Assembly (NCBI GenBank): GCA_002269645.1
Contig: NIVC01001468.1
Span: 1 to 64,000 of the forward strand
Source of the DNA: Macrostomum lignano
Lineage: Eukaryota
Length of the DNA stretch: 64,000 nucleotides
Direction: 5' to 3'
In this document: positions 4,597-63,876 of the stretch, in pieces
Layout: every line of letters starts with the position of its first letter
Numbering within the stretch: position 1 is the stretch's first letter
Made by a program: the position numbers and the translations under genes
The notes under the pieces: model-generated
Told to the model about the DNA's origin: nothing
The model's input: the letters and a program-made list of their open reading frames with translations, nothing else
Database searches by the model: none

Positions 4597-4744
4597 ATGT
4601 TGCTTCCGCGGCCTTTATTGCAGCTCCTGCTGCCGACGTTGCTGCTGCTGCTGTTGTTGCAGTTCGGCCGCCAGGCCTCCGCAGGCGCTCTCGACAACAT
4701 GGACGAGATCATATCATCCACGTCTAAGCTGATTGACAAGCTGC
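4597..4744 (+). CDS. Lar: Exon 1: signal peptide ([49 protein letters not shown])
   Basis: ATG at 4597, Leu-rich core ending A-S-A-G, donor C|GTAAGA, phase 1, joins exon 2 in frame. Not in the ORF track. Confidence 0.8.

Positions 4745-63876: not shown

Follow-up and report, generated by a model that had tools for sequence, protein, structure and literature searches.

Likely alternative cassettes at domain boundaries in a LAR-type receptor tyrosine phosphatase gene of Macrostomum lignano, a flatworm

A 64,000-nucleotide (nt) stretch of the genome of the flatworm Macrostomum lignano (contig NIVC01001468.1, positions 1 to 64,000; hereafter the window) carries on its plus strand the 5′ two-thirds of a gene for a LAR-type receptor protein tyrosine phosphatase (RPTP). 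On the basis of genomic sequence, public gene models, and protein comparisons, we consider it likely that this is an ordinary LAR-type gene with three or more alternative cassettes: a 102-nt exon in intron 1, a 51-nt exon in intron 7, and exon 9, which encodes the fourth fibronectin type III (FN3) repeat, FN4. Phase-1 introns bound nearly all domain-sized exons, which are separated by long, minisatellite-rich introns, so that a phase-1 segment with a length divisible by 3 can go in or out with the frame kept. In the arrangement that we propose, the 102-nt exon would place an acidic, tyrosine-rich peptide ahead of the first Ig domain (Ig1), the 51-nt exon would extend the FN2/FN3 linker by 17 residues, and FN4 would be left out of the dominant whole-animal transcript. 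The intron between Ig2 and Ig3 holds a 6-nt segment that may be one further alternative exon, a micro-exon resembling vertebrate mini-exon meB, and an Ig-less isoform may start in intron 10. We infer that the cassettes are regulated and that they may affect ligand binding; the "combinatorial adhesion code" that a preliminary description of this locus had proposed is speculation.

To identify the gene, rough joined coding open reading frames (ORFs) were used as the query in protein searches. The top matches were two M. lignano models, UniProt A0A1I8J799 and NCBI BOX15_Mlig000129g4, far above the rest, followed by LAR, PTPRF, PTPRD, and PTPRS orthologues from scallop, oysters, starfish, sawfly, and many vertebrates. 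Matches to Pecten, Asterias, Ostrea, Athalia Lar, and fish PTPRS and PTPRD had E values of 1e-107 to 1e-77 at 66-99% query coverage, with collinear alignment. The closest full-length relatives are LAR/PTPRF/D/S orthologues, which places the gene among the type IIa RPTPs (PTPRF/LAR, PTPRD, and PTPRS), in which mini-exons meA to meD are known (reviewed in PMC8711739). Both M. lignano models match the window exon by exon at ~97-100% identity (tblastn). Pfam recognized three Ig domains (I-set/Ig_3) and nine fn3 stretches in the predicted 1520-amino-acid (aa) protein, in keeping with the three Ig domains and four to nine FN3 repeats of this class. Exon 1 is signal-peptide-like (hydropathy 2.81), and a single hydrophobic transmembrane segment lies at 63773-63871. 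Together with the best matches, this architecture bears out the preliminary identification of a LAR ectodomain. The window stops 124 nt past the exon 13 donor, and the tandem phosphatase domains D1 and D2 would fall beyond it; the public models stop there too.

The gene model comprises 13 plus-strand exons from the ATG at 4597 to the donor after 63876, with AG/GT boundaries throughout and a single uninterrupted ORF of 1520 residues. Exon 1 (4597-4744) encodes the signal peptide and 19 further residues and ends in a phase-1 donor, C^gtaaga (carets mark splice junctions). Ig1 is encoded by exon 2 (13159-13464; tblastn, model, and Pfam), and Ig2 is split between exon 3 (15805-15981), which is followed by an intron at the vertebrate meA site, and exon 4 (24920-25030), which ends in …LYVR and is followed by an intron at the vertebrate meB site. 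Exon 5 (34328-34933) holds Ig3 and FN1, again by tblastn, model, and Pfam. The 5′ and 3′ parts of FN2 lie in exons 6 (37776-37876) and 7 (39702-39900), on either side of a phase-0 intron. Single repeats then follow in exons 8 (45456-45767; FN3), 9 (47514-47840; FN4, a phase 1-1 cassette), 10 (49070-49381; FN5), 11 (59162-59491; FN6), and 12 (61866-62149; FN7), the last preceding a second phase-0 intron. Exon 13 (62528-63876) encodes FN8, FN9, and the juxtamembrane and transmembrane regions and ends in the donor CC^gtaagt. The intron phases in order are 1,1,1,1,1,0,1,1,1,1,1,0. Phase 1, which had been taken as required for inserts, is thus found at 10 of the 12 introns, the other two being phase 0. 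The 13 exons previously described as core do form one ORF, but the word does not fit exon 9, which is skipped in both public models.

The 102-nt exon (10551-10652, plus strand, phase 1-1) lies in intron 1 and would add 35 residues ahead of Ig1. Its context is ...ttccttcactcaag^...^gtgagt, its length is a multiple of 3, and it is stop-free in phase 1. Coding character was scored as a codon log-likelihood ratio (LLR), with the 13 exons, each scored by leave-one-out, as the reference (range, 0.13-0.58; exon 1, 0.245) and random open intronic windows as the null. The 102-nt segment scored 0.285 bits/codon, within the exon range, and 1.1% of the random windows scored as high. A0A1I8J799 begins at ATG 10613 within this exon and reaches exon 2 via its donor.

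Protein searches also recovered a paralogous M. lignano LAR-like gene, represented by the fragments A0A1I8ISY9 and A0A1I8JQW9, which is ~52% identical in Ig1-Ig2. A0A1I8JQW9 has a homologous 35-aa segment (…PQQQQQLLQEQLKVLKSSVSTDPSESYYFVDFDRK-EARITEG, with the conserved end …SESYYFVDFDRK-EARITEG) that aligns ungapped with the 102-nt peptide at a score of 47, reached by 1 of 5000 shuffles (p = 0.0002). A0A1I8ISY9 represents the skipped form, …CCYA-DSMDAMITSTKKLKETI-K-EARITEG, in which the homologue of the exon 1 tail is joined straight to Ig1 (p = 0.0004). The N-terminal layout is common to the two genes: after the signal peptide come a tail of the form …MD..I.ST.KL…, a segment …YYF[IV]D[YF]D[KR]K that is optional, and the Ig1 start EARIT[QE]GPET. 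They differ across Ig1-Ig2 to the extent given above, and the paralog fragments end at the position of intron 4, which makes them uninformative on the other candidates. Because unconstrained intron sequence would keep no similarity at this divergence, exon 1 and the 102-nt exon are both read as coding, and conservation in the paralog together with the codon LLR marks the 102-nt exon as selected coding sequence. We conclude from these sequence comparisons that the 102-nt exon is real. With respect to inclusion and skipping, for which the evidence is gene models, A0A1I8JQW9 and A0A1I8J799 include the segment, and A0A1I8ISY9 joins the exon 1 tail to Ig1; on these models, the exon would be a cassette under regulation and not a constitutive exon. 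The junction strings are AGCTGATTGACAAGCTGC^CGGACAGCCAACAACCGA for exon 1 to the 102-nt exon, TCATTGATTACGATAAGA^AGGAGGCGCGGATCACCC for the 102-nt exon to exon 2, and AGCTGATTGACAAGCTGC^AGGAGGCGCGGATCACCC for exon 1 to exon 2.

The conserved end of the 102-nt exon (10613-10652) is acidic and tyrosine-rich (…EYYFIDYDK; paralog SESYYFVDFDRK) and lies directly before Ig1. In our own reading, it resembles a tyrosine-sulfation site. Pecten LAR has …SDFYRFTNK… at the matching place.

The second cassette, the 51-nt exon (41985-42035, plus strand), lies in intron 7 at the FN2/FN3 junction and would add 17 residues. It has a T-rich tract and the boundaries cag^...^gtaagt, is stop-free in phase 1, and holds the third-best signal pair among the in-frame candidates. 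The exact 51-nt peptide is present in A0A1I8J799, and BOX15_Mlig000129g4 has the skipped junction, …TLLGMASQPKGF; the segment proposed earlier is thus carried by one public model and skipped in the other. Inclusion is seen in the gene model A0A1I8J799 and skipping in the RNA-seq-derived BOX15_Mlig000129g4. The annotation behind BOX15_Mlig000129g4 draws solely on RNA-seq and transcript assemblies and discards minor isoforms (TACO isoform-frac 0.75; PMC5730564), so that skipping would dominate in the whole animal and inclusion, if minor, would have been lost at that filter. Inserts occur at the same FN2/FN3 junction in some molluscs (Pecten, ARTNCSRKTCFSEFV; Ostrea edulis, NFEV), and the Saccostrea and Crassostrea isoforms aligned have none. 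On these comparisons, we regard the 51-nt exon as a cassette that is probably genuine. Its junction strings are TCGTGACTCTTCTAGGCA^ATTCAGGGCAGATTGCCC with exon 7 and ACGCGGCCGCTGCTCACA^TGGCCTCGCAGCCCAAAG with exon 8. The characterization of the short exons as hidden was overstated, given that UniProt A0A1I8J799 already includes the 51-nt exon and, of the 102-nt exon, the 3′ part.

The third cassette is exon 9 itself, whose optional status the preliminary description had missed. Its donor, gtttgt, is the weakest of the gene, and both public models, including the RNA-seq-derived one, skip the exon (KTMEF^NPDAPEDIK). Exon 9 is intact in this copy and in a second genomic copy on NIVC01002990.1, with an in-frame 3-nt indel between the two, and is strongly coding-like (codon LLR, 0.488). 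Pecten isoform X10 likewise skips the orthologous FN4, and an Athalia isoform lacks it. The junction strings are GCAAGACTATGGATTTCA^CGCCAAGCGCCGCGCCCT for exon 8 to exon 9 and GCAAGACTATGGATTTCA^ACCCGGACGCGCCCGAAG for exon 8 to exon 10.

A competing account holds that the annotated junctions are the only ones used and that the four short segments and the internal ATG of the preliminary description arose by chance in repeat-rich introns, some having been adopted by ab initio gene finders. Splice signals were scored by pyrimidine content and generic consensus; position weight matrices built from the gene's own 12-13 sites were overfitted, missed the 51-nt and 102-nt acceptors, and were replaced. 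A moderate filter (pairs within 200 nt, pyrimidine fraction of ≥0.7, AG preceded by A, C, or T, and donor GTRAG[TA]) returned 29 acceptor/donor pairs, 6 of which were in frame and open. Three of these 6 had not been listed before: 18115-18174 (60 nt), 37118-37162 (45 nt), and 41570-41737 (168 nt). The 45-nt segment (tag^…^gtgaga; codon LLR, 0.024) is in intron 5, where FN1 meets FN2. With the pyrimidine fraction raised to ≥0.8, the plus-strand count was 6, compared to a first-order Markov expectation of 5.0. Frame and openness therefore prove little, and each candidate was judged on further evidence. The introns contain more than 30 minisatellite arrays (e.g., 13559-14694, 21922-23225, 25480-27094, 38317-39683, 52026-53352, and 57144-58020), which cause most of the long ORFs of the six-frame list on both strands and agree with the published description of the M. 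lignano genome (PMC5730564). A 30-nt minisatellite in intron 3 (18238-18640) gives 12 in-frame 6-nt pseudo-exons, tag^CTAWYA^gtgagt, and so illustrates how readily patterns of this kind appear in the locus.

Several observations weigh against the cassettes and on the side of chance. As a class, splice-signal pairs are no commoner than chance. The codon LLR of the 51-nt exon (−0.006; null fraction, 0.10) is intermediate and equals that of the 45-nt decoy. A0A1I8J799, A0A1I8ISY9, and A0A1I8JQW9 are all models on an error-prone early assembly and show frameshifts and intron read-through, and A0A1I8J799 has clear artefacts of prediction (part of exon 10 is frame-shifted, a weak donor is used internally, and the signal peptide is missing); mini-exons in such models may stem from ab initio prediction, not transcripts. 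The RNA-seq-based BOX15_Mlig000129g4 is without the 51-nt exon, exon 9, or any insert in introns 8-11. The copy on NIVC01002990.1 is 94-98% identical overall, with differences clustered in minisatellites, and 100% identical at every candidate plus hundreds of flanking bases, which makes it uninformative on constraint. Two word-indexed protein searches missed A0A1I8J799 despite long identical stretches in the query, so that their negatives are weak. One of the two was a search with chimeric junction peptides, which returned only BOX15_Mlig000129g4 and an unrelated FN3 protein. Chance cannot, however, explain either the conservation of the 102-nt peptide beside the same junction in a paralog of ~52% identity or its exon-like codons; the signal of the 6-nt candidate is 20-fold above expectation, and the BOX15_Mlig000129g4 pipeline drops minor isoforms. 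We therefore regard the chance account as improbable and favor the gene with at least three alternative cassettes.

The two public models also differ elsewhere. In A0A1I8J799, exon 12 is followed by sequence from 62981, a phase-0 acceptor inside exon 13 (…ttccag^TACGCG…, …SRLR^YAALGF…), which removes the first 151 residues of exon 13, and BOX15_Mlig000129g4 uses the acceptor at 62528; the 62981 junction reflects an alternative 3′ splice site or else an artefact of prediction. BOX15_Mlig000129g4 shifts frame near window position 63214 on NIVC01002990.1 and ends early (…VTLHGRRRKW…), which points to an indel in that copy or its assembly.

Among the short segments, only the 6-nt candidate has a splice signal that is unusual compared to chance. 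The segment, CAAAAT (33069-33074, plus strand), lies in intron 4 in the context ttttctgtttttttcctcttttcag^CAAAAT^gtaagt, with 15/15 pyrimidines and a cag acceptor; its length is a multiple of 3, it is stop-free in phase 1, and it ranks first in splice signals among the in-frame intronic candidates. A pyrimidine fraction of at least 0.9 and YAG, followed by GTRAGT within 30 nt, occurred once in the plus-strand introns and never on the minus strand, compared to 0.05 expected from Markov resamples, a significance estimate that is post hoc. Intron 4 splits LYVR^VRTISPHF exactly where vertebrates insert ELRE or DQRE (LYVR-ELRE-VRRVPPRF), that is, at the meB position, and intron 3 sits at the vertebrate meA insertion point (ESI/GGTPIR). 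Inclusion of CAAAAT would yield LYVR-AKF-RTISPHF. The junction string of exon 4, the 6-nt segment, and exon 5 is CTCAACTTTACGTTCGAG^CAAAAT^TTCGAACAATCAGTCCGC (short form, CTTTACGTTCGAG-CAAAAT-TTCGAACAATCAG).

These features raise the possibility that the segment is a true micro-exon of the neuronal type, a homologous or convergent flatworm counterpart of meB that would lengthen the linker by two residues and alter the presentation of Ig3 to ligands. The signal strength, the frame, and the exact placement at the vertebrate insertion point favor this reading. Opposed to it, the segment is in no model; in particular, it is absent from A0A1I8J799, the only public model compared that spans the exon 4-5 junction. 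There was no insert at the meB site among the invertebrate LAR proteins compared, and a representative search with Ig1-FN1 was dominated by giant multi-Ig proteins, with few LAR-like matches, which were without a meB insert and not close flatworm relatives. The product A-K-F replaces a conserved V, unlike ELRE and DQRE, so that on sequence the candidate should not be filed as meB. A scan for upstream UGC, GCAUG, and YCAY clusters near the candidates found nothing notable, and no UGC or GCAUG flanks the 6-nt segment. The micro-exon programmes of fly and mouse have only four shared exon positions, Lar not included (PMC8797185). The segment is identical in NIVC01002990.1 but lies inside a 931-nt identical run. 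A recursive-splicing role was rejected, since exon 4 plus CAAAAT regenerates no 5′ splice site. On balance, a micro-exon here is possible, though we would not expect it: of the earlier claim, the strong signals stand, and the segment lies in the meB-equivalent intron, with no support from models or comparison. If the segment is genuine, a reading that we rate as rather unlikely, the meB position would be a site where splice inserts are ancient or have recurred, in protostomes and deuterostomes alike.

In intron 3, the equivalent of the meA intron, a 60-nt in-frame stop-free segment (18115-18174) has the second-best splice signals (ctttttcattatcttcgtag^…^gtaagt). Its codon LLR of −0.57 is intron-like, and it would put 20 residues, including two Cys, into Ig2.

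No single segment stands out as the 15-nt exon that had been proposed; the best candidates lie in intron 10, at the FN5/FN6 junction. Two in-frame stop-free 15-mers with AG/GT flanks are present, at 51665-51679 (GGAGATTGGGAAATC; low rank and a codon LLR of −1.0, at chance level) and at 51954-51968 (both plus strand), and the 3-aa micro-exon (KPH) of Pecten at another FN junction offers a precedent. The two candidates, however, rank ~26th to 34th among the in-frame open candidates, have weak acceptors (pyrimidine fraction, 0.67), and occur in neither A0A1I8J799 nor BOX15_Mlig000129g4, and 51954-51968 is better read as the last 15 nt of an ORF that starts at 51926. A real micro-exon at this junction is very improbable, and the 15-nt segment is most likely due to chance. 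The junction flanks are GGGACAGG-[15 nt]-TGCCCTCGG.

The preliminary description had also proposed an in-frame second signal peptide before the sixth FN3 repeat, and such a start is present as sequence at ATG 59023. This ATG lies 139 nt upstream of exon 11 and is contiguous with it, so that the 5′ extension (59023-59161, plus strand), read through the acceptor, is a candidate first exon of an Ig-less isoform; 100 codons are open upstream of the acceptor. Its hydropathy is 2.83, compared to 2.81 for the exon 1 signal peptide, and ~2% of intronic ATG-ORFs are as high. The codon LLR is 0.126 from ATG 59023 to the acceptor (null fraction, 0.019) versus −0.469 in the 53 open codons 5′ of the ATG; such coding-like sequence only downstream of the ATG is the pattern that a real first exon would show. 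A second candidate, an alternative first exon at 51926-51968 (plus strand), supplies an ATG and 14 residues, has the top signal-peptide-like hydropathy of the window (3.39), and ends in a strong phase-1 donor, gtgagc, that would join it in frame to exon 11 (TAGTGATATTCGGCACTG^TGCCCTCGGCGCCCAGAG). At the sequence level, ATG 59023 and ATG 51926 would thus each open a first exon with its own signal peptide, in frame with the FN3 exons.

An Ig-less short isoform like PTP-3B of Caenorhabditis elegans, starting inside intron 10 from either the 5′-extended exon 11 (by transcription or trans-splicing into it) or the 51926-51968 exon, would account for hydropathies that match or exceed that of exon 1, for the change in codon usage at ATG 59023, and for the strong donor of the 51926 exon. 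In PTP-3B, the Ig domains and FN1 to FN4 are missing. C. elegans ptp-3 makes long and short isoforms, the short one from its own ptp-3b promoter (PMC6133548), and 38.8% of M. lignano genes are trans-spliced (PMC5730564), which is also in favor of this reading. Long in-frame ORFs, however, lie upstream of the acceptors of 3 of the 12 internal exons, and the one upstream of exon 9 has an equally signal-peptide-like, in-frame ATG that is non-coding (codon LLR, −0.58) and was rejected as an internal start. The c-region after ATG 59023 (…CYVAW^Q, here with the caret at the cleavage point) is a poor predicted cleavage site, and the two competing candidates weaken each other. We consider a short isoform of this kind unlikely, albeit less so than the 15-nt exon.

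The alternative exons would work like known LAR splice inserts, as in-frame cassettes at domain boundaries. Vertebrate type IIa RPTPs similarly have three Ig domains followed by FN3 repeats, with short in-frame cassettes and skipping of middle FN3 repeats, and the intron positions correspond at meA (…LRS^GALQIE in vertebrates and …SPN^GDLIIA in the flatworm) and at meB (LYVR^VRRV and LYVR^VRTI). The flatworm protein differs in having nine FN3 repeats, not eight, and no meA or meB peptide; its supported mini-exons lie before Ig1 and at FN2/FN3, versus Ig2 and the Ig2/Ig3 linker in vertebrates, and its meB-site candidate is 6 nt (AKF), compared to the 12 nt of vertebrate meB (ELRE/DQRE). The suggestion of a vertebrate-like mini-exon device is thus supported for the 102-nt and 51-nt exons and for the meA and meB intron positions but not for the 15-nt segment, which is at chance level, or the 6-nt segment, which has no model support.

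The LAR genes of molluscs, which are lophotrochozoans too, offer a second comparison (Pecten maximus isoforms X3, X8, X9, and X10; Ostrea, Saccostrea, and Crassostrea). They likewise have inserts at domain junctions, including FN2/FN3, a skippable FN4 cassette, and the 3-aa KPH micro-exon; Pecten isoforms also skip FN7. In sequence, the inserts bear no relation to those of the flatworm; the one at FN2/FN3 differs between the species sampled, and an 11-aa Ig1/Ig2 insert of Pecten has no counterpart found here. According to NCBI annotation, then, lophotrochozoan LAR genes generally have mini-exons and FN3 cassettes at phase-1 domain junctions, which are not special to this gene. The LAR orthologue of C. 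elegans, ptp-3, resembles the flatworm gene in that its short isoform arises by an internal promoter (PMC6133548) and the flatworm has signal-peptide-like ATGs in a late FN3 intron; the flatworm candidate start differs in lying before FN6. A literature search on flatworm LAR splicing found nothing.

Vertebrate LAR-RPTP mini-exons are a well-known case in which tiny inserts select synaptic partners. If true, the combination of the 6-nt segment, the tyrosine-acidic exon before Ig1, and the FN2/FN3 insert would give an isoform repertoire that tunes flatworm LAR ligand binding, and if a basal flatworm proved to have a micro-exon at the meB position, this would bear on the question of whether such splice-insert sites are ancestral hotspots. 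M. lignano is amenable to transgenesis. The practical yield is a corrected gene model, with a signal-peptide exon, 102-nt and 51-nt cassettes, and an optional FN4, together with the junction strings given above.

Scans of the window with Rfam and for tRNA genes gave no matches. A ~170-nt interspersed repeat is present in two copies that are 89% identical, one upstream of the gene (2163-2327) and one in intron 12 (62238-62406).

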